From: Paraphysomonas bandaiensis
Lineage: Eukaryota; Protista; Chrysophyceae
Assembly: GCA_965644295.1 (NCBI GenBank)
Contig: CBFFRP010000429.1
Span: forward strand, 76,218 to 140,217
Direction: 5' to 3'
Length of the DNA: 64,000 nt
Below, piece after piece: positions 12,195 to 64,000 of this stretch. Within the stretch, counting starts at the first letter, position 1; the number at the start of each line of letters is the position of its first letter. The notes below the pieces were generated by a model. It was not told the DNA's origin. It did not search any database and saw only the letters and a program-made list of their open reading frames with translations. The position numbers were made by a program, and so were the translations under genes.

Positions 12195-12291
12195 GCTGCA
12201 GCTAGAGCGTTAATTATACTCCTCGTTGAAATGTCATGATCTGTCCACCCATAAACAACACCACAACCCCATACAATATACGCATGCATGG

Positions 12292-12462
12292 ATGTATGTA
12301 TGTATGTATGTATGTATGTATGTATGTATGTATGTATGTATGTATGTATGTATGTATGTATGTATGTATGTATGTATGTATGTATGTATGTATGTATGTA
12401 TGTGTGTATGTATGTATGTATGTATGTATGTATGTCTGTATGTATGTATGTATGTATGTATG

Positions 12463-12493
<31 letters not shown>

Positions 12494-12639
12494 TGTAGGT
12501 ATGTATGTATGTATGTATGTATGTATGTATGTATGTATGTATGTATGTATGTATGTATGTATGTATGTATGTATGTATGTATGTCTGTATGTATGTCTGT
12601 ATGTATGTATGTATGTATGTATGTATGTATGTATGTATG

Positions 12640-12670
<31 letters not shown>

Positions 12671-12717
12671 CGTATGTATGTATGTATGTATGTATGTATG
12701 TATGTATGATATGTATG
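12292..12717. repeat. (TATG)n microsatellite, ~430 bp
   Basis: Direct reading; near-perfect tetranucleotide run. Confidence 0.98.
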
Positions 12718-12800
12718 CAGGTACAGCGTGTTGGTTATATGGGTGTGGAGTGGGTCTGGTCATCGTTGTTATTATCTTCCACATCTCATAGCATCTGAGG

Positions 12801-15800
12801 ATGTATTGGCCTTCCTTAGAAGCACCTGTGGACATCTCTCACAGGCGCCTAAGCACTCCCAATTATGTGGATATCGTAGTTATAGTCGGCTTATCGGGTC
12901 TGTTGTTCTATCTGCTGTATGTGCTACTGAAGCAGAGTCATGTGTGGAGACTGTGAGTGGATATCGTGATATAGTATACCTGTATAATGCATATGAGGAT
13001 AGTCAGAACAAGCAGCGTGTGAAAGAAGTGTTGGATCAGCGCAGGCACGTGAGAGACGAGTTCCGCACAGAGAATGGCTACTCGTGGGACTTCTGTATGG
13101 TGTTTAAGGTGTACAACAATCGCGACAACGCCACTGAACTGCAGAATAAATGGAACTTGAAGTATATACTACGAGAACTCACAAGAGGTGGATTTCAGAC
13201 CAAATCGTTTTATAGTGCACAGGTTGGAACTGACCTGTTAATATGATGCTTAGTTTGACATGCCTTGGTGTAGGCTGATGAGGTGTATGTAAAAATACGG
13301 GCTCCACTGGATCGACTTCTTAGGGAGGCGGATCGTATTGATCTCAAACTTCCGTTGAACCCAGAAAATCTCAAGAAGTTATTAAAAGAAGGCAGACGAG
13401 AGGGAAATAAGGTGCAAAGTAGATTATTTTTGCTTTAATTATGCACACCAAACAATGTAGTATTTGTAATATTCTTGTCTAATCTAGGAGCTTTGGGGTC
13501 CAGTTAATATTCCCGATACTAGTGTGGAAACACCACTGTCTCCGTACGACTACATATATGCCAGATACGAGTACGATAGACCGGAGGTCGCAAATTTGTA
13601 CCACGTATGGGACAACCATACTGTGTTTCGTGGTGTGGATAGACTGAAGCTGATGTACAGTATAATGACAGCCCGCAAAGTCGATGGAGGGTGCAATTTA
13701 GACGTTTACCGTATCATTAAAGACGGCGCCATGCTCGGCTTTTTTCCACTGCATGATAAGTTGGAGCTGTTGCAGCTGCAAGAGAAATGGCTTGTGTACT
13801 GTCAATATCCCTGGGACCAACCTATAGACGATGTGAAGAATTATTTCGGGGAAAAAATAGGACTGTATTTTCTGTGGCTAGCACATTATACGTCGTGGCT
13901 GATGTTTGCTGGTGTTATCGGCTTTTTTTGTTGGATCAATGTCGCTGTGGAAGGAAACGATCCGAATGCAGTTATTATGCCATATTTTGCAACATTTATG
14001 GCACTGTGGGCAACCCTTTTTTTGGAGTTTTGGAAACGGAAAGAGAGTAGGTATGTTTCTTTTGTACAAAATAGTTGCATCACTGCTTTCGTAACGTGCG
14101 TTCGACAACGTGGCTTTCTACATAGTATACGTCATAAAATTATATCACATTCCATGATACTGCAGGTATGCTATGATGTGGGGCATGTCTGGATTCGAAT
14201 CTGAAGAGCAAGATCGTCCTCAATTTGAAGGTGTCACAATGGCTTCGCCGGTAACAGGCCAAGACTATTTATATTTTCCACGGCGAGAGAGTTCGAAACG
14301 GCGGGCCTACTCGCTGTCTATAATCAGCGCTTTCATTGCATTAGTTGTGGCGGTTGTGGGGTCAATATTTATTTTAAAACTCGTGTTATCTCGTATCAAA
14401 GCGCTGACGTATGAGGGTACCCAATTAGGTGGCATAATTGCAGCTATTGCGAACGCAATTCAGATTCAAGTGATGAATATTATATATGGTGGAGTTGCCA
14501 TCAAACTAACGAATTATGAAAATCATCGTACTGACACGGCATATGAAGATTCTCTCATTGGCAAAACTTTCGTGTTTCAATTTGTTAACTCGTTTGCAGC
14601 TCTGTTTTATATTGCCTTTGTCAAACCATTTCTTCTCATCGACCCCTGTCTTGGACCGTAAGTGATATGAATTATACAGTGGTTATTGTGATCAACATGT
14701 GATGTGTATGTTAGATATATGTCAATAAATGTTCTAACTACTGCGCTCTGATGATGTTTTAGGTGTCTCAGTGAACTCCAGACGAATCTAGGAACAATAT
14801 TTCTCACTCGCCTAGCATTAGGAAGCACCTTAAAGGTTATTATACCAAGCGTGATGTCTCATCTGGCGGATAAAGCGAACTCCAAGGGAAATGTAATTCA
14901 TGAGTTGACGGAGGCTGAAAAGGAATTCAATTTGGTGCGTAGGTGGAAGTTTTGTTATTACTGTAAATTTGAACCTGTATTTTTTACACTCGGACTCATA
15001 TATTATGTGCTTATAAAGATGGAATATCATGTCATGCTTGGGCCGTTTCAAGATTATGCGGAGGCTGCTATACAGGTGTGTGAGGAATATGCTGTAGAAA
15101 GCGTACGCTTATTTCATTGGTCGTCATGCTGCCGCCGATTAAACTTTTGCCTCACATATCTTAGATATGTTGGATATCAATGACTTTTTTGTGTTTGTAG
15201 TATGGGTACGCGACAATGTTTGTTGCAGCCTATCCTTTGGCTGCGATAATGTCTTTTGTGAACAACTATATAGGTGAGCTATTCGCTGCGTATTTTGTAT
15301 TGAAGTGAAGTAGAAAGTAATTGTGGAGTGAATTATTTTATTGTGTTTTCAACGCTTACTGTTATAAAATTGTTACGGGTGTGCAGAGCTGAGGGTTGAT
15401 GCATGGAAGTTGCTACAACAAAGTCGGAGACCAGAACCTAGATCAGCTGAAGATATTGGTACATGGTAGGGAGTGATCACGTTATTCTTAATTTACCATA
15501 TATTTACGTGTGCGATTCTCTGTGTTTGTAGTATAAATAGCTTCTGTTTTTAATATTTGTTGTATTATCCCAGGCAAAGTATACTGGAGATTGTGTCGAT
15601 ATTCGCTATGATCATCAACGCGGCATTGATATCATTTACTGGCACTTTTGTCGTAAACTATACCTGGAATGTCCGAGCCTGGATATTTATGACAACAGCG
15701 TGTGGAATATACCTGTACGTTGACGTACCCATTATGTTTTGTCGAACCTTTATGTTTTAGTATTCGTGGCTTGTCGATGTATATATCAGTTACGGGCCTC

Positions 15801-34187: not shown

Positions 34188-35525
34188 TTACTTCTGAAAA
34201 TCATGATTATCATTGAATGTTTCTTGAAGGTCAATTTCAGTTTCGCTCGTTGACACGAAGAATAATATACGGTCGTAATCTTCTTTGTTGGCAATACCTC
34301 TATGGATACATCCCGGGAACAGCTTTAGTATAGAGTACGGTTCCGTGACTACTTGACAGACCTCCAAATGATCGGTTTTCTCAGCGGAGAAGAGTGTGTG
34401 TGGCTCTCCAAAGTAAAGATCCTCGGTGGGAGACTTAATGGGGCCATCTGGATGGCGAACAAACTGCGTGGCATTCTGCTGAGTCATCATTGTCATCGGA
34501 ATCATGAGATTGCTCACAGTAGTGCCATAATCTTGATGCCATCTCTGGTTAAGAGTACCATTCTTTGGAGACACAATGAAGCCATAGGAGAGAATAACAC
34601 GCGGCGTACTGTAAAATTCCTTTAGGAGAGAAGCCGTAAAACTTTCGACCTTGGAATGCAGTTTTGATGCAAGCCATTCAGGATGAGTTTTCCCGTTATG
34701 GAAGAGGTTAGCCCAGTAAATTTCCTTCTGGGCACTAGTTTTGAAGTTAAATATCTTCGACGCATTGTCGAGGGCACTCTTAAGGAGGTCGACTTCGTTA
34801 TCATTGCAGGAGCGCATATGGGCCACTCCACCTGAGTACGAAGCAGTGGTCTCTCTCCAGTTTTCGACTATAAATATTAGTTGACAAGTCTCATGCCATG
34901 CGTACAACATAGCAAAAGGAGCAAGTGCATAGCACACCCAGAGCGGCATATTGAGACAATAGGAAATCGGGTAGAGTGTATTAATCAGCCAACATGCAGT
35001 CCCAAGATTATTGTAAGATTGTGCCGGAGTTAGCCATTCTTCGACAACGAAATACCATGGGAGTTTTGACGTGTCTTGGGAAGGATAAATAGACTGTGCG
35101 CTCACAGCAAAGTCAAACAAGCCAGTCGATATTTCTACGACAGTAAATAGTACAACAAATGTAACAATAGGAGATCCGAGATGAACACACCAAATTGCCA
35201 GGCAATATTGAGCTAACAGGTCAGCTAGCCAGTCCCAACCACAACCAATAACGGTTGACTGATTGTAGTGTCTTGCAATAGGCCCATCAATCCAATCCAA
35301 AAGCACGCTTCCAAATATGAGTGTGGCGATGCAAAACTTCCATTCAGGAGCATGAAGAATAAGCACCAAGGCAACAACAGCCATTAGTATGCGAAAGTAA
35401 TCAATAAGATTGGCATAATACCACCACACATCCTTAATTGTTTTCCGTATTCGGTGTGTGATCACATCTCCAGTGCTAGCTACAGGGCCTGAGACCCACT
35501 TCCCTTTCTGATTGATGTACAACAT
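34188..35525 (-). CDS. CDP-alcohol phosphatidyltransferase fused to a PhyH-like 2OG-Fe(II) dioxygenase domain
   Basis: DWIDGPIARHYNQSTVIGCGWDWLAD is the CDP-AP signature. C-terminal QRWHQD..IHRGIAN..DRILFF fits HxD..H..R. One uninterrupted ORF; the start is uncertain. Confidence 0.8.
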   Translation of the reverse strand: MLYINQKGKWVSGPVASTGDVITHRIRKTIKDVWWYYANLIDYFRILMAVVALVLILHAPEWKFCIATLIFGSVLLDWIDGPIARHYNQSTVIGCGWDWLADLLAQYCLAIWCVHLGSPIVTFVVLFTVVEISTGLFDFAVSAQSIYPSQDTSKLPWYFVVEEWLTPAQSYNNLGTACWLINTLYPISYCLNMPLWVCYALAPFAMLYAWHETCQLIFIVENWRETTASYSGGVAHMRSCNDNEVDLLKSALDNASKIFNFKTSAQKEIYWANLFHNGKTHPEWLASKLHSKVESFTASLLKEFYSTPRVILSYGFIVSPKNGTLNQRWHQDYGTTVSNLMIPMTMMTQQNATQFVRHPDGPIKSPTEDLYFGEPHTLFSAEKTDHLEVCQVVTEPYSILKLFPGCIHRGIANKEDYDRILFFVSTSETEIDLQETFNDNHDFQK

Positions 35526-35746: not shown

Positions 35747-36229
35747 GTATGTATGTATGTCTGTATGTCTGTATGTCTGTATGTATGTATGTATGTATGT
35801 ATGTATGTATGTATGTATGTATGTATGTATGTATGTATGTATGTATGTATGTATGTATGTATGTATGTATGTATGTATGTATGTATGTATGTAGGTATGT
35901 ATGTATGTATGTATGTATGTATGTATGTATGTATGTAGGTATGTATGTAGGTATGTATGTATGTATGTATGTATGTATGTATGTATGTATGTATGTATGT
36001 ATGTATGTATGTATGTATGTATGTATGTATGTATGTATGTATGTATGTATGTAGGTATGTATGTATGTATGTATGTATGTACGTATGTATGTACAGTGTA
36101 TGTATGTATGTATGTATGTATGTATGTATGTATGTATGTAGGTATGTATGTAGGTATGTATGTATGTATGTATGTATGTATGTATGTATGTATGTATGTA
36201 TGTATGTATGTATGTATGTATGTATGTAT
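35747..36229. repeat. (TATG)n microsatellite, ~480 bp
   Basis: Direct reading. Confidence 0.98.
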
Positions 36230-36378
36230 ATACAGTGTGTATTATTTGTACAGCTTGTCTGCCAATGAGATGTCTGGATGTCTTTATTGTCAGTGGTTAG
36301 CTATGGCTTCGTGCGTGTTCTATTAAACGCTCCAGTGCTGCAGAGTAAACTGTGCTGCTAAGTGTACATCAAAGAGCA

Positions 36379-37878: not shown

Positions 37879-38393
37879 GAAAAATGTATATAATAATCTA
37901 TTACCGATGTGTAGATTTCACTTATGTGTTCCATTGTTATTCACAACATACTATTTCCGTCGAATCAACGCATCGGGATGTTGTTCAGAAGATAGAATAG
38001 AGGTTTAATCTTCAATATTCATTCGAAAGTTTTCTTGATAATGTTGCAATGAAGTAATTACGTGTTGTGATTTATTACTTCGTATCTCGCTCATGTTAAA
38101 GCCACTCTACATGATATACGTATATCATACTCACTCGCAATATCAAGATTATAGTTCCATGTGCTTTTATTATACCAAATAATCTCTTTTTATTGTTCAA
38201 TATGTTTAACATAATCCATATTACCGTAAATCATACAACTTTTTAAAAACAAGTCTCAACGGATAAGAATCAGAACAGTACTCATATGAAGAGATGATAT
38301 TTTATATTCCGAAATCTTCAGACACTACTTATTAAATATAGTGAAATATACGGCAAAAAAACATGTGTAAAGAGGCGGCAAGTGTGATTTTAG

Positions 38394-39151
38394 CAGGGAT
38401 AAGGAACAATATATTGCAATGTATTGTAAAATATATTGATTGGTGGACTGGTCAAATATTCAATCAATATTGTTTCTGTTAAAAGAGCTCACAATACTAA
38501 TGCAATATATTGCAATCAATATTATGATAGGCATAGAAGTGAAGATTCAACTGTATGGTGCAAATATACGCCTATGTATACAAATATCCGGAAAATACAG
38601 AGGATGATGAAGCTGAAGTTGGCTATGCGGAAAAAATTCTTCAATCAGCTCAAAATCTTAAGAAACGGAAAGTTGAAATATCTAAGTACAGGTGCACGAG
38701 CCATGTAGTATGTACTTCCCATACATGTGAACGCCTTTTCAGCCCAGCAAAACTGATTATATCAGTGTTGCGCAAACGTATGCATCCTATACACTTAATA
38801 AGCTGTTGTTTCTGAAAGCTAACCGACAGTTGTGGCCGGATGCAAGCATATTTCAATCAATGTTAAATGAATATGGTAATGATGGTGTCACCGATGATGG
38901 CTCAGAGGATGAGTATGAGGAAACTTTTAATTAATTAAGAGTAGTGGGTTTGATTATCCAGTGACCTTAGACCTTATAATGGCAAGTAGTAAAAATGGAT
39001 ACTACGGATGTGTTTACTTTCTGATTACTCATATACTAAAATATTGCAATATATTGAAATAGTATTGTAGGGCCGGTTTAAAAAATCCATCAATACTATT
39101 GATGGAACGCTATCTAACAATAGTATTGCAATATATTGTTTCCTATCCCTG
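38394..39151 (+). mobile_element. Non-autonomous hAT element, copy 1
   Basis: TIRs CAGGGATAaGgAACAATATATTGCAAT; 8-bp TSD GATTTTAG (38386-38393 and 39152-39159). Internal relic CERLFSPAKLIISVLRKRMHP..LLFLKAN resembles the hAT dimerisation domain. Confidence 0.92.
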
Positions 39152-39514
39152 GATTTTAGAGACAACGTCACTAGGAATTAGGAACACATTCAAATAATGT
39201 AAACTATCAATCAAAACATACATTTCATGAAACATGTTAACAAGCTCTGTGAAAGGTATCGCTCGTTGTTTCATTAACTGCGTTACCCACAGTAACTATT
39301 AATTGTAAAGAGTATGCCTTATATCTATCAAGATCATCATAAATAGGGAAGTTTTTACTGAAAATCTCGTTGCAAATATTATCCTGTGTTTTTCATTGCA
39401 TGACACTCTATGATTGTATGGAACGGTATGGCACCTCATATCTAGAGATTTTATGATATGGTGATAGATACTCACACCGTTACATACCACTGTACATGCA
39501 CTTTTCAGTTGAAT

Positions 39515-39806
39515 CATGTATACATGGACAGCAGTTGTGATGTAGATGCAATAGCGGTAGACCCACTGCGAAAACAAGAGTACAGTGGACATCAATTCAA
39601 AATCCTTCATTGTCGAATGATTCTGGTCTGCCTCTTACCTTCTTGAACAATTCTCTCTTCAGTTGCTTGTCTTTCCATGTCTGATCATATAACAAGCAAT
39701 ACTTTTCTTTTCCTCAGCAGAAAAGTGATGTCCATTGTACTCTCGTTTCTGTCGCAGTAGTTCTACTGCTATTGCATCTACTTCACAACTGCTGTCCATG
39801 CAGATG
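39515..39806. repeat. Imperfect ~80-bp inverted repeat, possible transposase 5' relic
   Basis: 39515-39593 is the inverted counterpart of 39726-39806; both arms encode MDSSC(D/E)VDAIAV. Confidence 0.7.
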
Positions 39807-40165
39807 ATAGAGAGGAGGATATAAAGCTGGACATGCACGCTGGATTTTACGGACGGTGTGGTATACACTGTACTCTCTACAGTGTCATGGACTACAGAGA
39901 AATATCTCGGAAATTTAGCAGGATGACATCACTCCAGTTTCCTCTCAATATCGTATTCTAAAATTGCCATATTTTTGACTCTAAGTCATTGTTCGAATAT
40001 TCTGTTTTTCTATTCATAATGCCAGCTGATCGAAGAAAATACCGATTTTCAGGTGGTTTGAATGTATTTCAGAATCATAATTTAAGAGTTGTGAAAAGCG
40101 ACGAGTGTAAAAAAACAAACAAGATCTAACAGCCACACTACAGTGTACCAATCCAATCACTAACA

Positions 40166-40573
40166 ATGTCAATGTCATTGATGCGAACTGATCCTTTCTA
40201 CCTGGATGCATTTAGCCCTATGGAAACATCTATTGGGGGTCTTGCTCCCACCTCTAAAATGCAGCCTCTTCTGGATTGTAATTTGATTGAGACAGATGAA
40301 GATTATCATATTCGAGCAGAGCTGCCTGGAGTAGAAGAGAAAGATCTCGACATCTCCATTGAGAATAACCGCTTAATCCTCAGAGGGGATAAGGAAAAGA
40401 AAAAGGAGATTGATGGAGACCACGAGCATATCGTTGAGAAGAGCTCTGGTCATGTTCAGAAAGCCTTGCATCTTCCTCAAGCAGCTGACGTGGACAATTG
40501 CAATGCTACATTCAAAGATGGAGTGCTCACTGTATCATTTCCTAAACTTTCGGATTCTAAACTGAAGAATTAA
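40166..40573 (+). CDS. Small heat shock protein (Hsp20/alpha-crystallin domain)
   Basis: IRAELPGVEEKDLDISIENNRLILRG, ATFKDGVLTVSFPK. Confidence 0.93.
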   Translation: MSMSLMRTDPFYLDAFSPMETSIGGLAPTSKMQPLLDCNLIETDEDYHIRAELPGVEEKDLDISIENNRLILRGDKEKKKEIDGDHEHIVEKSSGHVQKALHLPQAADVDNCNATFKDGVLTVSFPKLSDSKLKN

Positions 40574-40933
40574 GCATTCAGACATCTTCTGAGCGTTATT
40601 AAATGTAGGGTTCATTATGACCGTACAGTGTTGAGTTTAAGGCGTGGTAATCACCGATAGCCAATCATTTTTATGCATATATTATTCAATGTAGCTAGCT
40701 ATTTAATGATGAGTAGTGGGACTAGGAAGTTTTCTTAGGACCTTGTAAAAATGAAGGGAATTTTAAGTATGCATTGTTTGTCAAGCAACGACCACCCTTG
40801 AGGAAATAGTCGAATACAAATATGTCTTGACCAAGGAAACGGAGTAGTGGTGTGTCAGCTTTGTAGCACTCCAGTTTAGAGTAGGGAAGCATTACAGTTA
40901 TGGCTACGTCGGAAAAAAATACAGCCTATAATC

Positions 40934-41349
40934 TATCATCTCTTGAGCAAAGGGGAATTCGAATGTAGCATGACCAGGGCTAGGAAACAGGATATAGGAA
41001 AGTCTGATTATTACATGAGAACGGTTGTGTACAGAAACTAGTTTATAACTATAGACTAGATTTGCTAAATACTACTAGTGGCGGGCAACCGTCTCGGGAC
41101 TGCTTGTGCATCGCTGCGAGCACCATGGTGAAACCGTCCCTTGTATTGAGGTTAGTCGGGGGGTCTACCTTTGGGCAATGTGTCTGGCGGGCCTGTGCCA
41201 TGGATTATGTCAGGGGTGGATGAGGCGAGATGTATATGAGAGTGTAAGTCGGTGGTGGAGATGGTGCTGGTTGTTGAGGTGGGGTTTCGGTATCATATCT
41301 TGAGCAAAGGGGAATTCGAATGTAGCATGACCAGGGCTAGGAAACAGGA
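40934..41349 (-). mobile_element. ~298-bp insert (40993-41290) flanked by 59-bp direct repeats
   Basis: 40934-40992 equals 41291-41349 with one mismatch. The duplicated segment includes the TSD and the left TIR tip of hAT copy 2. Confidence 0.75.
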
Positions 41350-42071
41350 AACAATATATTGAATTGCAATAAAATATATTGATTGGTCGACCGGCCAAAA
41401 ATCCCATCAATATTGTTTCTGTTAAAGTACCTCACAATATATTGCAATATATTGCAATCAATATTATTATAGCCATATAAGAGAAGATTCTCAACTGTAG
41501 GGTGCAAAATGAATATAAATAACCGAGAAATTGATTACAACATTACAGAGGATGATGAAGCTGATGTTGACTATGCGAATAAAATCGTCCTACAGCTCAA
41601 AAAATTAAGAAACGTTCAGATCCACGAGTCATTAACGGTTGCCAAGTCCTGGTATGTACTTCCAATACATGGGAACGTCTGTTCAGCACATCTAAACATC
41701 TTATATCAGTGTTGCGCAAAAGTATCCATCCAACTTAATATGCTGTTGTTTCTGAAAGCTATTCGACAGTTGTGGCCGGATACTAGCATATTGCACTTCA
41801 TCCTGTGGATGAATATGGTGATGTTGACGTCACCGATGATGGCTCAGAGGATGAGGACGAGGTGGATTTTTATTAGCTATTTGGTTGTCATGTGATCTTA
41901 ATGATTAATACTAAAAATAGAATCTACGGATGTGTTTACTTACTGATTAGTCATACTAATATATTGCAATATATTGTAATTGTATTGTTGGGCCTGTTTA
42001 AAGTCTCCATCAATAGTATTGATTGAACGCTCTATAACAATAGTATTGCAATATATTGTTTCCTAGCCCTG
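41332..42071 (+). mobile_element. Non-autonomous hAT element, copy 2
   Basis: TIRs CAGGGCTAGGAAACA; 8-bp TSD AGCATGAC (41324-41331 and 42072-42079). Internally homologous to copy 1. Confidence 0.92.
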
Positions 42072-42181
42072 AGCATGACAGCCACATCATATTCATGTTC
42101 AAGTAAGCGATTCCATTCATTATTGTAGAATAATAGATACACAGAAATCCAGAAAATGCGTTAAAAATTATGACTAACTGG

Positions 42182-43633
42182 CTATATAGAAAATACATCT
42201 ACTTCTTCTTCATCATCGTAGTCATTTTCGCTATCTTTTCCATTGTTACTACCACCATAGAGTAAACCGGATAAAGAATGTGTCGAAGACGACAATTTCT
42301 GAGCATCTCTAACATGAGAACTTGCTCTAGTGGAGGGTTCAGATGGGGGAACAAAATACACGTATGTCATATACATGGCAAGGCCAAATACAGATCCCAC
42401 AAATGCCCACAAAACCAGAGTGCCAGAAGTAATGCCAGTAGAATCCCCTGATCCAACTACAGAACGGCCATCATATCCCATAAACTTAAATGAATTGTCA
42501 GTAGAAACAGTGCTAAATGCAGAGATTGAGGCATCCAAGACAGTCACACCAAGCAGCGATGCCGTAGAGTGCATACATATATGCATCTTGCTGTCGATGG
42601 TCAACACCTCGCTACGCTCATCTTCAGCAGGGCCACGCTCACCAGACCAATCATAATCTGGGGCCTCTGGTCCACCGTCTTCTGGGCCGCCGTCTTCTGG
42701 TCCACCGTCTTCTGGCCCACCATCCTCAGGCCCGCCATCTTCTGGTCCACCGTCCTCTGGCCCACCATCCTCAGGCCCACCATCTTCTGGTCCACCAGCT
42801 TCAGGTCCGCCATCCTCAGGCCCACCTTGAAGTTTTCTAACTGGGTGTCCTATCTCTCCTCCGTCATTCGGTGGTCCAATATGTTCGACATCTCGCCTGC
42901 ACTGTGCGTTGTTGAAAAATTGTCCAGATATTATATTCCTGTTATTCAGATGTGATGTTGATAGGTCAAAGGACAGAAAACTATACACTTACGCTGACTG
43001 AGAAGAGGTTTCAGACACCTCTCGTGAGAAACGAGCAAAGAGCTCTGTGCTCGTTGAGGATTCAATGGCAGGGTAGTACAAGCATGTGTCTGGAGCAAAC
43101 TGTATCTCATCAGTTAAAACAATACAATCAAGGAACAAACCACTAACCAATTCCACCACAGATGGCGATTTCAAACATTCATTCTCCGAGTTAGAATAAT
43201 GCGTGAAAGCTATTTTCTCTGATTGAAAAGCATTGTAATATGACCTTGGATGCTTGTTTGCCGCTATTCCCCCGCAAAACAACTGAACAGATTGAAAATT
43301 CGTTTGAGATTTCATGGCATAGACAAGTTTCTGGCACGATCCATCCCCTCCATAGTTCTGTAATATAGTAGACTTATTTCCTGTCATCTGTCTACATGTA
43401 TTGTCTGTGTACTGAGCATACAGCACACTACCAGTGGAAGAATCGCATGTAAACTTGAAGTAATCAATAGCGGCGTCATCGTCAGCATAGAATGCGGTGC
43501 ACTGACCACTGTACGCCCTGAAGAGCTCTTGCCCCTTGCAGTAAGCATCTTTAGAAAATGCAATGACTGCAGCCTCGCCTTTGCCATGAACAGTGTGTAG
43601 ACCAAACACTAACAGCGCGATAGTTATGATCAT
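42182..43633 (-). CDS. Type I membrane protein with Cys-containing ectodomain and (GGPED)n stalk
   Basis: Signal peptide; ORFs 42989-43633 and 42182-42988 joined by a GTAAGT..CAG intron at ~42940-42992; ~11 GGPE(D/A) repeats; one TM helix; acidic tail. Confidence 0.75.
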
Positions 43634-44331
43634 AGTTTATATCTGTATCAGAGGGATATCAGAGTACGGTTATCGTTGACAAGACCTATATATACAGAGA
43701 TAGCAAGAAAAGCATACGCTGGTGGCAGAATAACCCTCGACCACTCACTCTTATCTCTTGTAGGTATAGTGCTGGGCTATTTATCTAATATGAGGGCAGG
43801 TTACTGTGCTATGCTCTGTACTCTGCTGTACATAACCCCTCTAATGTATACCCCGTACAGCAGGCTGTATTCCACGCAACAGAAATATACGGTATACAGC
43901 AGTGTGAAATTTTCAATATCAACAAAAATAGAGGAAAACCCTTGGTTTTATTTATTCCATCAACAGAAATAGTGGAAAACCTTTGGTTTTATTTCAGAGT
44001 CACTGTGTATGTGTATATATATACAGTATGTACAGTGGCTGGCCCCTACGAGGACCTGAAATGGGCGCACCTTGTAGGGGCCACCTTGTAGGAGCCAGCC
44101 TCTGTACGTATATGTCTATGTACGTATGCACTGAGGGTAGTGCGGTATCTATATGTATATTCTGCTGTATATTTTCATATCTATGTACCTGTGTATGTGT
44201 CCAGATCTCTCCTGGCTATCTATGCATATCTAGATATATATGACATACCTGCGCTGCTGTTATATTCAGCAGGTGGAGACGGACAGCACCCCTAACACTT
44301 TCAACCCCACAATCTCATTCTATATCCCCTA

Positions 44332-53147: not shown

Positions 53148-53739
53148 TTTCGTACACGCATTTATTTGGTAGATAGATTGTTTCATTCTGCTTGGGCGTT
53201 CTTATTTGTGAAGTTCGTGGTTACATACTATCTATCGATATTTTCACGATAATATAGCATGGGCATAATATATCAACATATCAACACACGTAATTAACAC
53301 AATTAATTAATACCGACATCCAACTTGTGTAGAAAGTCAGCTGTACAAGATATATGCAACAAGTATCTTGTATATTGTATATTTCATTTGCAGATTTATC
53401 ATAAAACCATGACGATGAAACTATAACACTGACTGCCCCATTCTGAGCGCGTACTTAGGTAGATTCGGATGGGGGTCGGGTGGGTACCTAACTAATACTT
53501 GATTTAAGTCCCATACGTTATTTGCTAGCTACCTACTGATCCCAACTAGCTACATCATTATCACATGGTATTCAGCGCTGAATATGCAGTGAGACCCCGG
53601 GTGGGGTAGTGCTGAACTAAGCAATGTGTACATAGATAGAGGCGATCAATCGCAGCAGCACTCAGCCGCACCCACTAGGGGGCCGCACGCAGTAATTAGT
53701 TACGCTGTCAATATGAGGCAGATACTTCGCTGTAACACA

Positions 53740-53768
53740 GTTATGTGGGATTCATACCCACTAAAACA
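53740..53768 (-). repeat. LTR-terminus relic related to the copia LTR
   Basis: GTTATGTGGGATTCATACCCACTAAAACA versus GTTATGTGGGATTCTCACCCACTAAAACA at 58979-59007. Confidence 0.7.
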
Positions 53769-53839
53769 ATAACGACTATTAAAACGAGTAATCGTCATTA
53801 TACTACAGCTATATAGTATGTCATCTAGTCACCTTCTAG

Positions 53840-54352
53840 GATAAAACGGATGTGAAATCTTCATTATAAAGATACTGTGTACATTGATAATGTTTAACAT
53901 GACAACACACAATTGTGTATGCATTGTGTATGCAATGCACAAGCAGTTCCGATGCGGTCACAGTCAGGGCAAATCACATACGCAAAACTAATATAGTGTT
54001 GTAGACGAACTTAATTCTATTAATTACATGCACTACACTAGAGTTGAAGTAGTAGATAAACCACAATAAACTGACAAAACCCAATAATAATCAGACATTC
54101 ATATATACCACGGCGGCATTAGTATGCTCAAAAACAGAGACTGCAGACACCACAACATCGATGTGGACTCGACAACGCAGGCCTCAGCCTACTCACTCTC
54201 ACAATCACAACGACCACTAGCTGAGCCCAACCCAAAAATCCTACAACTACTCCGAGTGACATCCACCCCTAGATAAAACGGATGTGAAATCTTCATAAAG
54301 ATACTGTGTACATTGATAAAGTTTAACATGACATCACACAATTGTGTATGCA
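53840..54352 (+). mobile_element. ~340-bp insert flanked by ~82-bp direct repeats
   Basis: 53840-53923 nearly equals 54272-54352. An extra 11-bp duplication (TTGTGTATGCA) sits at the left junction. The insert shares motifs with 40993-41290. Confidence 0.72.
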
Positions 54353-54788
54353 ATTCAATAACATTATCTATCTAGTTTAACTACTAAAACTTCTCTTAAA
54401 ATATCTTAGTTGTCTGAAATGGTCAATTGTCAATATACAAAGACGTAGCTTGTTTTTCATTACAAACTACTGCCAACCGACTTGACACCCTGCCAGAAGC
54501 ATATATTTTTGCTATCACCTCATCAACGTTGTAATTGCTGGAGGCCAATAGATTTCTGAATCGTGTGTCAGGAGAACGTAATTCTATGTTCGACAAAGAA
54601 CAACATATAAGAATACAAGGTAATAACATAATATATATACATGATACGTGATTAATATAAAAACAGTTTTTTCCCCCTTTTATCCATGATATTTTTAATT
54701 ATTAATATATATAATTTTGGGAATATCATGGGTTACTACATCGTCCACGCTACGTTTATGATACTCCCGTTGATCATTGAGTGCGTCA

Positions 54789-58546: not shown

Positions 58547-59007
58547 TGTTGGGAAATGCTCATTTTACTTAGATCAAAGAGAGATTAAGTTGTTAGACTA
58601 GATAGATTTATTAATATCGTTTACACGAATTGTGTTAAACAACACAAGCTCGTTTTGTGCCATGCATAAATCACTACTTCTGTAGACCTTTCGCTACTAA
58701 ACATATCTTGAAAGAGCAAACTATTTCAGTTTTCTCAATATCATAACAGCATCTACACATCACCATACTTCACTGTATTCTCGTACATTGTCTTCAAGTA
58801 CCACATTGAATATACTAGGATACAGTCCATATTCTAATACTCCCACTCAATGTAGAATGCAGTGATACGAAACAACAATGAGTACAGTGATCTTCATGCT
58901 ATAAACTAGTCTCATAGGTAAAATAGATGTGAAATCTTATCAAGATACATATATAACTAGCAGTCAACTAGATATATAGTTATGTGGGATTCTCACCCAC
59001 TAAAACA
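58547..59007 (-). repeat. 3' LTR (~461 bp)
   Basis: TGTT...AACA termini; purine-rich tract immediately upstream on the minus strand; matches 63708-64000. Confidence 0.9.
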
Positions 59008-59012
59008 CACCT

Positions 59013-62000
59013 TTAACCTCTTCGGGGTCGCTTCTTCTGCTGCTCCTCAACTCTGGTTGACACACTTCTCTTAACCCCGGTAATAGTTTTCTCATGACGA
59101 CTGAAAAGTTTCGTTGACAATGCCTTCGTGAAAATATCAGCCGCCATATCATCCGTCGACACATGAATCAACTTTGCCGTAGGAAATTTTCCATTTACAT
59201 GCTCTCTCACCCAGTGATACTTGATGTCTATATGCTTCGACCTCTTATGATACACAGGATTCTCGGAGAGATCTTTCGCACTCTTGCTATCCATAAAGAA
59301 TGGAGTCGGCTTCGCAACTAAGAGCCCGAGCTCCTTGAACACCCCCCGAAGCCACACCAGTTCTTGCATAGCCGCATACTCCGCCATATATTCAGATTCC
59401 ATGCTCGAAGTTGCAACTGTGGTCTGTAGTTTAGACTGCCAGGCCAATGCGCCTGCACATAAGAACACAATGTATCCTGTTGTCGATCGCCGAGTCAGTC
59501 TATCACCAGCCCAATCTGAATCACTGAACACATGTAAGTCGAACTCACTCCCACTGAATCTGATGCCCTCATCAATTGTTCCACGCAAATATTTCAATAA
59601 GTGAATCGCCAGTTTGCACGATGCATATGTCGGACAACTACTAAATCGAGACAATAACCCCACTGCATAAGCCAGATCAGGTCTAGTATGCATTGCTAGA
59701 TACAACACTGCTCCAATAATTTGCCGATACGGAAATGAGTCAACCCACTGCTTCTGCTCCTCCGTAAGTTCACGTTCCTCTGCCAACAGATCCTGAACAT
59801 TAGTAGGTAGTGGGGCCTCCTTATTCTTACTACTCTTTCCCATAACTGAGCTGAATTTCTTGATAATATTCTTAGCATACTCAGATTGATCTAACATATA
59901 CCAATTTTCTCCTCTGGTTATCCTGATGTTCAGAAATCGCTTACACACTCCCAGATCATGCATCTCGAATGTTTCACAGAACCTACGCTTTACGCTTTCC
60001 AAGTAAGTCAGATCAGCGGATGCAATTATGATATCATCAACATATATCAATAATAAATGCAGTTTTCCGTTACTCCATCGCATATACAAACACGTATCCA
60101 AAATACACGGAGTAAAATGCAATGATTTAATAAACTTGTCAATATGTTTATTCCACTGTCGCGGTGAAGATCGCAGTCCATACAATGCCTTGATTAGTTG
60201 AAAACACCATCCAGCTAGTAATTCCTCATCTGGTGGAGGTGCCATATACACGTCATCCTCCAGATCTGCATAGCAAAATGCGGATGATACATCTAATTGA
60301 TGCACATGCATCTGTAACATAAACGCAATCGCTAACACTAGTCTAATGGTTATACCCTTAACCACTGGAGCGAAAGTGGACGGCTCCTCCTCCTTCTTCT
60401 CTTGGAGATTTCCTAATGCCACTAGCCGAGCCTTGTACTTTACTATATTCCCTAGTATGTCTCGCTTCACCGTATGCACATATTTCGCTCTAACTAATTT
60501 CACTCCGCTTGGAATTTTCACGATCTTCAAGACACGTCTTTTCAGCAATGATGTCTTCTCCACCATTCGAGCTTTTCTCCATTGTTGATACTGTGGAGAT
60601 CTCTCTGCCTCGGCATATGAATTTGGTATCTTGATATCTTCTGTCTCTGCATGGTTAAGATCAATATTATGCGCATCCGGTACTTCAACCATATTAATCT
60701 CTCCTAAAACTGACGCGTTTGCCAGTCTCCGCTGCAGCCGTTTGCGTCGGACCCGACCATCACCATCTAGTTCAATCGGTCGACGAGGTATATAAGAACC
60801 CGTACCTTGCTCATCCTGAGCACGCACATCGTGCGTTGTGGGAGGAGCCCCGCTCACAACCCCAGACTCATAGTCTTCAGAGGTCTGCAACCTCACAGCT
60901 GTCTCCTGACAGGTTGGGTCAGGACTCTCCTGTAACCCTCCAGGTCTTCCCTGGTCCAGCACCCTGGCTGGCATAGTACTCAGGGCGTCCCCCTTTCCTA
61001 TATATCCGGTATTCCCGGGAGTTTCTGCAGTCATTCGCACTACGTCCTCGACGTGAATCGGCACCCGGTGCTCGATATGCTTCCGACCTGCAGTTACCAG
61101 AGATCGATAGGCTACTATTACCCCCTTTCGATCTACTACTCTCGTGGTCTTGTAGAGAAGACCATCCTCATCATCAATATGATATGTACCTTCTAAGCCC
61201 GCATAGTCAGACACAATTTTCGGTCTCTCGGCCTCCTTCACTCGAAGAGCATCTATCTCAGCGAAATAGCTCTCCGAGCGTGACGGTATGGACTCATCAG
61301 TTAATACATGTACCGACGTGACGACCCTATCAGTCGCAGGTAGATATACATCATATCCTACCTTTTCATCTGAATATCCTATCAGATATCCGATAAGGGC
61401 CTTGTCGTCCCAGTCTTTCCGTCGATCCGCCTTTGTAGTGAGGACATACGCACGACACCCCCATACTCTGAGATATTTCAGGTTGGGAGCCTCACCAGTC
61501 AAAAATTCAAGAGGGGACATATACCCCTTCGCTGTCTTTGTAGGCAATCGAATTAATATGTACCTGGCTGCCATGTAGGCATCTAGCCAAAACTGTGAAG
61601 GCAATCCTGACTGAATCAGCATCGCTAATGTCATCTCACCACAGGTCCTGAATTTCCGCTCCTCAATCGCGTTCATCTCAGGAGAGTCCGTAGAGCTCCA
61701 CGTATGTTGATAGCAACCCTGTGACCTAAGATATTGTCGCAGCTCATCACATATTAGCTCCCCTGCTCCATCTGCATGGTAATGATGCATTTCTAATTTG
61801 TACCTTTTCACATCTCCTTCAAAAATCTTCTTGAAAACCTGCAGTACCGATGACCCAGTCCTATGAACAAGCCCTTCCGACCAGAACATCCGACTGGCAT
61901 GGTGTGTTAGTTTGAGCACATATATTTCCCCTCCTCGAGCTGGACAATTTAAGTATACTGCTATATCGGCCGAGAAATTTGGACGAACGGAGTCCTCATC

Positions 62001-62822
62001 CTTTGTCCGAAAACTTACTCTGGTGATCTTCGCCCTGGCGCATACATCACATAGACACTGTTCTTTGGAAACACGTTTCGAGAGATGTTTTCGTTTCAGT
62101 CCAGTCCCAATAATTAGCATTCTTTTGTGGGCTTCTACCAACGCATGCTTGTTAAAATGACCCGCTCTCCTATGTAACAGCTCCAGTTCATCCTCACCCG
62201 TACGGTCACTGAGATTTACTTCTGAATCACTGGATGTCGATACGTCTGGAAGCTCCAATAACTGCTGTGTTGGCACAGCAGTCATTCCATTCTTCATAGG
62301 TCCCTCCAACACCAGCTCATCCGTATTTCTGTCATATATCTGTATACCATACCATACAGTAAATCGATATCCCATATCGTTCAACTTCCGTCCAGAACAA
62401 AGACACCGATTTATCTGACTTGATACCTCAATGTTCTTCCATGCTCCACGGGAACCTACACTCGTGACGCATATCTCTGACCCTTTTTTCGAACCATTAA
62501 TAACCTTTGATGTGTGCATATGACTATCAAGTATATTCACATCATTTATCAAAAACATTGATGACGAACAACAGGTATCAATGTATGTATAGTGAATATC
62601 CTCATGCACACTACTGCATATATTCGTCTCATACACATTACATGACAAGTGATACTCTTCCTGTTGCTCGATCATATTTGCTTCGTCTTCGTCAGACAAA
62701 TCCGCTGGCTCTCCACGCCTGATGTTTTCAACTGTAAGTAGTCTTTTGTCTGGTTTCCTTCCATCTTGAAACCTCACAGCCTTGCTCTTGCTTTGCAGTA
62801 CTTCTTTTTCGATGCTGGACAA
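59013..62822 (-). CDS. pol: Copia pol (protease, integrase, reverse transcriptase, RNase H)
   Basis: YIDTCCS; LHRRAGH..CDVC, HADGAGE; HQLDVSSAF, YVDDII; FSDSDWAG, KHIDIKYH. Confidence 0.96.
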   Translation of the reverse strand: MSSIEKEVLQSKSKAVRFQDGRKPDKRLLTVENIRRGEPADLSDEDEANMIEQQEEYHLSCNVYETNICSSVHEDIHYTYIDTCCSSSMFLINDVNILDSHMHTSKVINGSKKGSEICVTSVGSRGAWKNIEVSSQINRCLCSGRKLNDMGYRFTVWYGIQIYDRNTDELVLEGPMKNGMTAVPTQQLLELPDVSTSSDSEVNLSDRTGEDELELLHRRAGHFNKHALVEAHKRMLIIGTGLKRKHLSKRVSKEQCLCDVCARAKITRVSFRTKDEDSVRPNFSADIAVYLNCPARGGEIYVLKLTHHASRMFWSEGLVHRTGSSVLQVFKKIFEGDVKRYKLEMHHYHADGAGELICDELRQYLRSQGCYQHTWSSTDSPEMNAIEERKFRTCGEMTLAMLIQSGLPSQFWLDAYMAARYILIRLPTKTAKGYMSPLEFLTGEAPNLKYLRVWGCRAYVLTTKADRRKDWDDKALIGYLIGYSDEKVGYDVYLPATDRVVTSVHVLTDESIPSRSESYFAEIDALRVKEAERPKIVSDYAGLEGTYHIDDEDGLLYKTTRVVDRKGVIVAYRSLVTAGRKHIEHRVPIHVEDVVRMTAETPGNTGYIGKGDALSTMPARVLDQGRPGGLQESPDPTCQETAVRLQTSEDYESGVVSGAPPTTHDVRAQDEQGTGSYIPRRPIELDGDGRVRRKRLQRRLANASVLGEINMVEVPDAHNIDLNHAETEDIKIPNSYAEAERSPQYQQWRKARMVEKTSLLKRRVLKIVKIPSGVKLVRAKYVHTVKRDILGNIVKYKARLVALGNLQEKKEEEPSTFAPVVKGITIRLVLAIAFMLQMHVHQLDVSSAFCYADLEDDVYMAPPPDEELLAGWCFQLIKALYGLRSSPRQWNKHIDKFIKSLHFTPCILDTCLYMRWSNGKLHLLLIYVDDIIIASADLTYLESVKRRFCETFEMHDLGVCKRFLNIRITRGENWYMLDQSEYAKNIIKKFSSVMGKSSKNKEAPLPTNVQDLLAEERELTEEQKQWVDSFPYRQIIGAVLYLAMHTRPDLAYAVGLLSRFSSCPTYASCKLAIHLLKYLRGTIDEGIRFSGSEFDLHVFSDSDWAGDRLTRRSTTGYIVFLCAGALAWQSKLQTTVATSSMESEYMAEYAAMQELVWLRGVFKELGLLVAKPTPFFMDSKSAKDLSENPVYHKRSKHIDIKYHWVREHVNGKFPTAKLIHVSTDDMAADIFTKALSTKLFSRHEKTITGVKRSVSTRVEEQQKKRPRRG

Positions 62823-63724
62823 TCGATGGCAAGATGTTCCTTTGACTTACAATTTCTGCACCCAGTATATTCGGCACTTCCAGGTCGCTGCCCTGTAATC
62901 TCTGTATCCTTCTTCATCGGCTTCTTCTTACCGTTGTTCTTCTTACGATGATCCCTCTCTCTGCGATATCGTTTCTTACTGTCTATCAGGTTCAGCTCCT
63001 CCACTCTTTTACGCTTCTTCTCCAACGCTTCCTTCCCAGCCATAGTATCATCATAGCCTTCTATCTTACGTGATACAGTTACATAATTAACATCATCATC
63101 CATCAAGTATAATCCAACTCTCAGTTGAGCATACTCTTCATTGAGCAAGCCTTCTCGTAGTCGACTTGTTTTTGATACCTCCGAGATATCCTGCTGCTGC
63201 TCCTGTAGTTCCTTCAGCAGTAGTTCGAACCGTAGTACGTAGTCCTTCGCCGTCTCCTCCGGACGCATACGGAAAGAACCATATTGAGTTAAGAGGTCAC
63301 TGATCCTATTTTGCTTCCCTCCAGCAAAACACTTCTTCAACTCATCAATCATTACATGTGTTTTGAACCTGTTTACACCACTCCCTTCTGCCTTGAACGC
63401 TTTGTGGGTAAGATGGAATTTACGCAGCGCTTTCGGGGAATGCTGCACCGCATCCCTGCAGTAAGAATAAGCTATGGCGTTCGCCTTCCAATACCTCTTC
63501 ACAGCCTGTCTGTACGCCTTCTCCTCCATCAACGTAAGTGGCTGCTCCCCGAAGTCGCTCTCCTTAGGTGGCAGTTCCACCGCTACCTCGCTTTGTTCCT
63601 TCCTCATAAGGAATGTCTCGAAGTCCTCAATCCATTGTTCAACGTTAGTCTCGTTGAACTGAGGAACTACTCCTCTATCCTCCTTCTCTCCTCCTCGCTC
63701 GCTACCATGTTGGGTAATGCTCAT
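62774..63724 (-). CDS. gag: Copia gag
   Basis: FRMRPEETAKDYVLRF; zinc knuckle CRNCKSKEHLAIDC. Confidence 0.9.
   Translation of the reverse strand: MSITQHGSERGGEKEDRGVVPQFNETNVEQWIEDFETFLMRKEQSEVAVELPPKESDFGEQPLTLMEEKAYRQAVKRYWKANAIAYSYCRDAVQHSPKALRKFHLTHKAFKAEGSGVNRFKTHVMIDELKKCFAGGKQNRISDLLTQYGSFRMRPEETAKDYVLRFELLLKELQEQQQDISEVSKTSRLREGLLNEEYAQLRVGLYLMDDDVNYVTVSRKIEGYDDTMAGKEALEKKRKRVEELNLIDSKKRYRRERDHRKKNNGKKKPMKKDTEITGQRPGSAEYTGCRNCKSKEHLAIDCPASKKKYCKARARL
63697..63707 (-). promoter_or_regulatory. Primer binding site
   Basis: TGGTAGCGAGC directly after the ...AACA end of the 5' LTR. Confidence 0.75.
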
Positions 63725-64000
63725 TTTACTTAGATCAAAGAGAGATTAAGTTGTTAGACTAGATAGATTTATTAATATCGTTTACACGAATTGTGTTAAA
63801 CAACACAAGCTCGTTTTGTGCCATGCATAAATCACTACTTCTGTAGACCTTTCGCTACTAAACATATCTTGAAAGAGCAAACTATTTCAGTTTTCTCAAT
63901 ATCATAACAGCATCTACACATCACCATACTTCACTGTATTCTCGTACATTGTCTTCAAGTACCACATTGAATATACTAGGATACAGTCCATATTCTAATA
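63708..64000 (-). repeat. 5' LTR (partial)
   Basis: Matches 58547 onward with only one mismatch seen by eye over the visible ~293 bp. Confidence 0.93.

Follow-up and report, generated by a model that had tools for sequence, protein, structure and literature searches.

The window of 64,000 nucleotides of Paraphysomonas bandaiensis DNA analysed here contains two small non-coding inserts, each bracketed by a long direct duplication, and the question raised by the locus is by what route such inserts arrive and duplicate so much of their surroundings. In the initial annotation, the two were read as circularly permuted copies of one non-autonomous element, and their origin was sought in templated break repair or in copying from a template that was circular or arranged head-to-tail, as for retrozymes or Penelope-like elements. 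The part of this proposal describing non-autonomous, non-coding repeat insertions with long duplications stands, whereas the part deriving them from a circular or ribozyme-bearing template does not. The best explanation, to which we assign a probability of roughly 55%, is that both inserts are 5′-truncated copies of non-LTR retroposons flanked by long target-site duplications (TSDs).

The duplication around insert 1 was recovered both by self-comparison of the window and by a repeat finder, and it is real as originally described: 59 bp at 40934-40992 recur at 41291-41349 with 58 of 59 positions identical, the sole mismatch falling at 40940/41297, and the two copies bracket the 298 bp of the insert (40993-41290). 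The duplicated segment joins 41 bp of host flank to the outermost 18 bp of a MITE, which belong to the left terminal inverted repeat (TIR) of that element. In the left copy, the host flank includes the 8-bp TSD of the MITE, AGCATGAC, at 40967-40974 and is followed by TIR sequence at 40975-40992, where the copy runs directly into insert 1. The right copy ends in the 18 bp that form the true left terminus of the MITE and runs on into an otherwise complete element. Microhomology is found at neither junction of insert 1. The inserts are non-coding and lack TIRs and poly(A), as had been noted for both; in insert 1 there is no credible ORF and no Pfam match, the ORFs that overlap it are likewise without a Pfam match, no simple-repeat tail is present and the copy ends in TATA. 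A tRNA scan found nothing. The sense of insert 1 is probably that of its C/A-rich minus strand, and the end at 40992/40993 lies at the sequence block referred to below as motif B.

The target of insert 1 is one of two copies in the window of an ~740-bp element with terminal inverted repeats, which are 78-90% identical to each other. Copy A (38394-39151, plus strand) is flanked on both sides by the 8-bp TSD GATTTTAG and shows the uninterrupted left end, and copy B (41332-42071, plus strand), the target itself, begins with CAGGGCTAGGAAAC and has its TSD AGCATGAC at 41324-41331 and 42072-42079. The TIRs are ~25-30 bp long and begin with CAGGG, a terminal start that we take to resemble the maize Ac terminus. 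The element appears hAT-like, an assignment made by TSD length and TIR only, and its internal 128-aa ORF has no Pfam match at E≤1 and no transposase domain. The family is present at high copy number in each of the four public sequencing runs introduced below, with a summed contig depth in the tens of thousands, and at the edge of copy A (39151/39152) the contigs break into unrelated flanks. The left TIR of copy B carries an extra 7-bp AGGAAAC that is missing from most other copies of the family and is located exactly at the entry site of insert 1. Because the 59-bp duplication spans the boundary between host and MITE and its second copy continues into a complete MITE, insert 1 must be the younger of the two elements and must have entered the left TIR of the MITE 18 bp from its outer end. 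The same layout of host flank, MITE TSD and 18 bp of TIR, with the second copy leading into the complete MITE, rules out a simple tandem duplication.

The relation of insert 1 to the rest of the genome was examined with Logan contigs from four public runs (X1, X5, X7 and X12, bearing four organism labels), which were aligned at 80% likeness on positions 38300-42300 around insert 1. The stretch is found in runs deposited under several organism labels and also in marine metagenome and metatranscriptome runs. Host DNA beside insert 1 is at single-copy depth (26.6 in X1 and 80.9 in X5), and a unique X1 contig of 1,885 nt covers 39123-40992 with 0 differences. From 40993 onward the summed depth in X1 is ~38,000-44,000 as compared with 26.6 in the single-copy flank, an increase of ~1,500-fold, and a jump of like pattern at the same position is seen in X5, X7 and X12, with depth remaining high throughout insert 1 and the MITE. 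Insert 1 is a fragment of a dispersed, very high-copy repeat family of the order of 1,500 copy-equivalents. At 40992/40993, 28 X1 contigs break and their flanks are mutually unrelated (agreement 0.39), so that this position is a fixed linear end of the family, abutting different DNA at different loci. At the opposite side, three contigs of X12, which may be alleles of a single locus, read beyond 41290 into one conserved sequence (agreement 0.94), and this continuation of 30 nt is absent from the window; these three contigs from one run suggest that the 41290 end is a point of truncation. Within the insert, position 41211 was considered as a putative junction between fused pieces and is crossed by 43 contigs. 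The internal order of insert 1 is therefore the normal arrangement of the family, and an origin as a one-off chimera was rejected.

The same contigs show that the site differs among related strains. In organisms B (X5, in a contig of 2,505 nt) and D (X12), contigs join 40956 to 42089 with ~9 nt between them, and since these relatives have an allele that lacks the MITE and the insert together, the site is young and polymorphic. The unique X1 contig carries 16 letters past 40992 that do not align to insert 1, and the X1 strain may thus have an allele with the MITE but without the 298-bp insert. Searches with motif A, one of the blocks common to the two inserts, gave 0 matches in viral contigs, and in metagenome contigs gave 23 loci, all of them chance 18-19-mers by BLAST. 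A 41-bp match in one metagenome locus (L005) lies within a prokaryote-like ORF and is without an Rfam match.

The second duplication is likewise real, with 53836-53923 recurring at 54269-54352 in an alignment of 88 positions that is 93% identical and contains a 3-nt indel, and it encloses the ~345 bp of insert 2 (53924-54268/70, the uncertainty reflecting an ambiguous edge). Read on the plus strand, insert 2 (53924-54270) comprises an 11-nt repeat of the target end, motif A, motif B followed by TATATA at ~54085-54109, and ~160 bp of unrelated C/A-rich sequence that closes with motif C. At the left junction, the last 11 nt of the target are repeated as a stutter (53924-53934), after which an ATGCA microhomology leads into motif A. 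The left copy of the duplication belongs to a copia-LTR-like relic. Once 53924-54352 are taken out, the rejoined sequence aligns without a break to the 3′ part of a copia LTR at 58547-59007, and as the restored site is collinear with this LTR, insert 2 sits in an LTR relic and its duplication is a target duplication. The nesting of both inserts in repeat-derived DNA, a hAT-like MITE end for the first and a copia-LTR relic for the second, and the abnormal length of the duplications, 59 and ~88 bp, are thus borne out. No other structure of direct repeat, insert and direct repeat was found in the window by the repeat finder, nor in a separate scan of positions 1-36,500.

Around insert 2, at 53739-53768 and 54366-54440, lie segments in opposite orientations that resemble the beginning and the 3′ part of the copia LTR; the host site is an LTR relic that has been rearranged, and not a clean solo LTR. 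The copia-type retrotransposon from which the comparison LTR was taken occupies 58547-64000 on the minus strand and runs off the end of the window, with gag, integrase and reverse transcriptase in long ORFs. Its LTR is ~461 bp long (TGTTTTAG...CCCAACA) and is followed by a PBS-like TGGTAGCGAGCG. Over the 293 bp that can be compared within the window its two LTRs show 100% identity, and this copia insertion is therefore very recent.

Similarity between the inserts, which are compared on opposite strands, is limited to short blocks that exceed chance. Motif A extends to ~27 bp at 85% identity and motif B is 22 bp at 91%, and of 2,923 segments of equal length drawn at random from the window, none attained either score against insert 1; the score of the segment from A to B was reached by 0 of 500 dinucleotide shuffles. 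The inserts are also alike in their strand-asymmetric, C/A-rich composition. The initial annotation was correct that A and B are common to both, and their order is A then B in each, which makes them collinear, with a spacing of 98 nt in insert 1 as compared with 150 nt in insert 2 and a spacer that cannot be aligned. Membership of the two inserts in a common family is a weak suggestion at the sequence level, given that they are alignable over ~50 bp only. With A and B collinear, the claim of circular permutation hangs on the 11-mer C, and C is at chance level: 19% of dinucleotide shuffles give an equally good local match when the C/A-rich start of insert 1, read on the minus strand, is compared with the end of insert 2, and the final bases of C run into the CTAG at the ambiguous boundary of the second duplication. 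That C should close insert 2 has a probability of ~1e-3 by a zero-order estimate, a post hoc figure that is not counted as evidence.

Target-primed reverse transcription (TPRT) of a retroposon RNA is favored as the source of the inserts by the fixed common end, the apparent truncation at the other end, the target duplication with an empty site that can be reconstructed, the junction with microhomology and extra nucleotides, and the nesting in other repeats. Two features expected of this process are directly visible, in that insert 1 has many dispersed relatives sharing one fixed end, and in that removal of each insert with one copy of its duplication restores an empty site, a continuous MITE terminus in the first case and a continuous LTR in the second. 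In the proposed sequence of events, a non-coding retroposon RNA would have been reverse transcribed at the target by a LINE enzyme encoded elsewhere in the genome, and the two target strands would have been cut 59 bp apart for insert 1 and ~88 bp apart for insert 2, giving rise to the long duplications. Insert 1 would then represent a 5′-truncated copy of its family, with its sense on the minus strand and a fixed 3′ end at ...AATCAGACTTTCCTATA, and its landing in a MITE already in place would have duplicated 41 bp of host and 18 bp of MITE. Insert 2 may be an older insertion of a related sequence into the copia-LTR relic, having the two short collinear blocks A and B in common with insert 1, and its 5′ end was probably joined through the ATGCA microhomology with a short stutter. 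For the second half of insert 2, the mid-insert position of block B and its TATATA suggests either a related family whose tail is longer or template switching of the reverse transcriptase that produced a chimera, and both fit equally well. Chimeric retrocopies of the U6-L1 type arise through reverse-transcriptase template switching, and insert 2 resembles these in that its B-like block and TATATA resemble the natural terminus of the family to which insert 1 belongs, followed by the ~160 bp of unrelated sequence.

Truncated LINE and SINE copies, such as those of human L1 and of RNAs mobilized in trans, provide the closest comparison, having the same fixed end, truncation at the other end, target duplication, microhomology or extra nucleotides at the 5′ junction, and nesting. 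At insertions of 5′-truncated L1, microhomology and extra nucleotides are known, and in occasional cases the TSDs are extremely long (PMC2912911). The differences lie in the length of the duplications, for which the L1 mode is 14-16 bp as compared with 59 and ~88 bp for inserts 1 and 2, and in the tail, as neither insert has the poly(A) or simple-repeat tail of a truncated LINE or SINE. Both the TSDs, far longer than is typical of LINEs and SINEs, and the missing tail count against TPRT as the mechanism. Within the window, no LINE, partner reverse transcriptase or full-length parent was seen.

The main rival to retroposition is repair by template switching (FoSTeS/MMBIR or aborted synthesis-dependent strand annealing), in which ~300 bp would be copied from an ectopic repeat and the strand would return 59 or 88 bp behind its point of departure, yielding an insertion with a duplication and no transposition. 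An insertion bracketed by a duplication of tens of bp is the classic footprint of such repair, and templated insertions of this kind have the same layout as the inserts, including a stutter at one junction, as found together with the ATGCA microhomology at the 5′ junction of insert 2. The source of insert 1 is moreover a very abundant repeat, and its position in a transposon end may be a break-prone one. A copied patch with an arbitrary start would not, however, be expected to coincide with the boundary of an element, and one junction of insert 1 falls within 1 nt of the natural end of its family as defined by the 28 contigs, with microhomology at neither of its junctions. The break-repair alternative in the initial annotation is weakened by the coincidence of this junction with the natural end of a repeat family, and we consider an origin of the inserts by template switching to be improbable, while keeping it as the foremost competitor of the retroposon explanation.

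Copying of a small non-autonomous element from RNA or DNA in circular or head-to-tail form, with copies that start at different points of the circle, would account for motif B being terminal in insert 1 and internal in insert 2 and for motif C being terminal in insert 2 and internal in insert 1. The post hoc improbability of the position of C could be cited in its favor, as could the fit of the ~300-bp size and the long TSDs with metazoan non-LTR retrozymes (PMC7229834). Retrozymes and Penelope-like elements (PLEs) have in common with the inserts a small size (~300 bp), non-coding content, low GC and TSDs longer than usual, and PLEs in addition form partial tandems that resemble permutations (PMC7229834). 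The distances around the supposed circle nevertheless disagree, being 98, 89 and 111 nt from A to B, B to C and C to A in insert 1 as compared with 150, 175 and 22 nt in insert 2, and the match at C is insignificant and runs into the ill-defined border of the duplication. The defining feature of metazoan non-LTR retrozymes is a type I hammerhead within tandem repeats of ~150-450 bp (PMC7229834). The inserts differ from retrozymes and PLEs in lacking a hammerhead or other ribozyme, a tandem arrangement and a stable fold as circles, and in the linear family end that is fixed in the genome. An Rfam search of the whole window at the gathering threshold returned nothing, and at E≤10 no ribozyme was found in either insert, insert 1 giving no Rfam match and insert 2 none above noise. 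As a ribozyme split in a linear copy would be missed, head-to-tail dimers of both inserts were also searched, and the hammerhead core CUGANGA is absent from both strands of these. Folding of the linear and circular forms of both strands gave z between -0.6 and +0.6 relative to shuffles, with no excess stability. The ribozyme scan and folding check that the initial annotation had suggested therefore gave no support to its reading.

Further observations bear on the same point. Neither site contains a head-to-tail tandem, both inserts being single units and not arrays, and no ORF or Pfam domain of the Penelope type, with reverse transcriptase and GIY-YIG, was found in or beside the inserts. In 28 contigs the B end of the family of insert 1 adjoins unrelated DNA and not the head of the family itself. 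A fixed end was the observation that the initial annotation had itself named beforehand as telling against its reading, and it is found for this family at 40992/40993. Through the chance-level match at C, the lack of a ribozyme or stable fold and the fixed linear end, copying from a circular template is already largely refuted. What would be left of it, namely a small retroelement without a ribozyme that is copied from a head-to-tail or circular template and inserted by a process making duplications of tens of bp or more, is very improbable. An artefact of assembly, in which mis-joined haplotypes or reads at a hemizygous repeat insertion would have generated the flanking duplications, agrees with the polymorphism of the site among related strains and with the 16 unaligned letters of the X1 contig past 40992, which may mean an insert-free allele, but is quite unlikely, as the copies differ in the way of aged real duplications (1 of 59 positions for insert 1; 7% and an indel for insert 2) and the structure is internally consistent, the second copy leading into a complete MITE whose TSDs match.

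Insert 1 and insert 2, taken as truncated retroposon copies, represent ordinary nested-repeat biology, the first being a truncated piece of an abundant repeat in a MITE end and the second an older one in an LTR relic. It is mildly unusual that the duplications are as long as 59 and ~88 bp, and their length is the one point worth following up across the genome. Should long duplications prove to be genome-wide and not an effect of assembly, they would constitute a peculiarity of this marine protist, pointing to widely staggered target cuts or to gap-filling repair. For such a survey, the pair serves as two clean, small examples, each with an empty site that can be reconstructed.

The remaining features of the window lie outside the two inserts. 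An intact 135-aa ORF on the plus strand (40166-40573), 360 bp upstream of insert 1, resembles by eye a small heat-shock protein of the alpha-crystallin type, and the protein collection searched contains neither an identical sequence nor a relative at E≤1e-20. Downstream of the MITE, a minus-strand ORF at 42182-42988 contains about twelve 15-bp repeats encoding GGPED-type units, and may belong to the same gene as the 214-aa ORF beside it (42989-43633). Repetitive DNA of other kinds includes tandem arrays of 197-bp and 184-bp units at 36-968, which adjoin a tyrosine-recombinase (Crypton-like) gene, a long array with an 8-bp period within overlapping ORFs at 12208-12900, and an (ATGT)n microsatellite at 36000-36240. 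A minus-strand ORF at 34191-35525 appears to be a fusion of CDP-alcohol phosphatidyltransferase and dioxygenase-like parts, and in the protein collection searched it is present, as an exact match, only on a 1.5-kb JGI contig (sample 3300017004, L024). This contig is apparently a transcript, and if so the fusion ORF is expressed as one unit.
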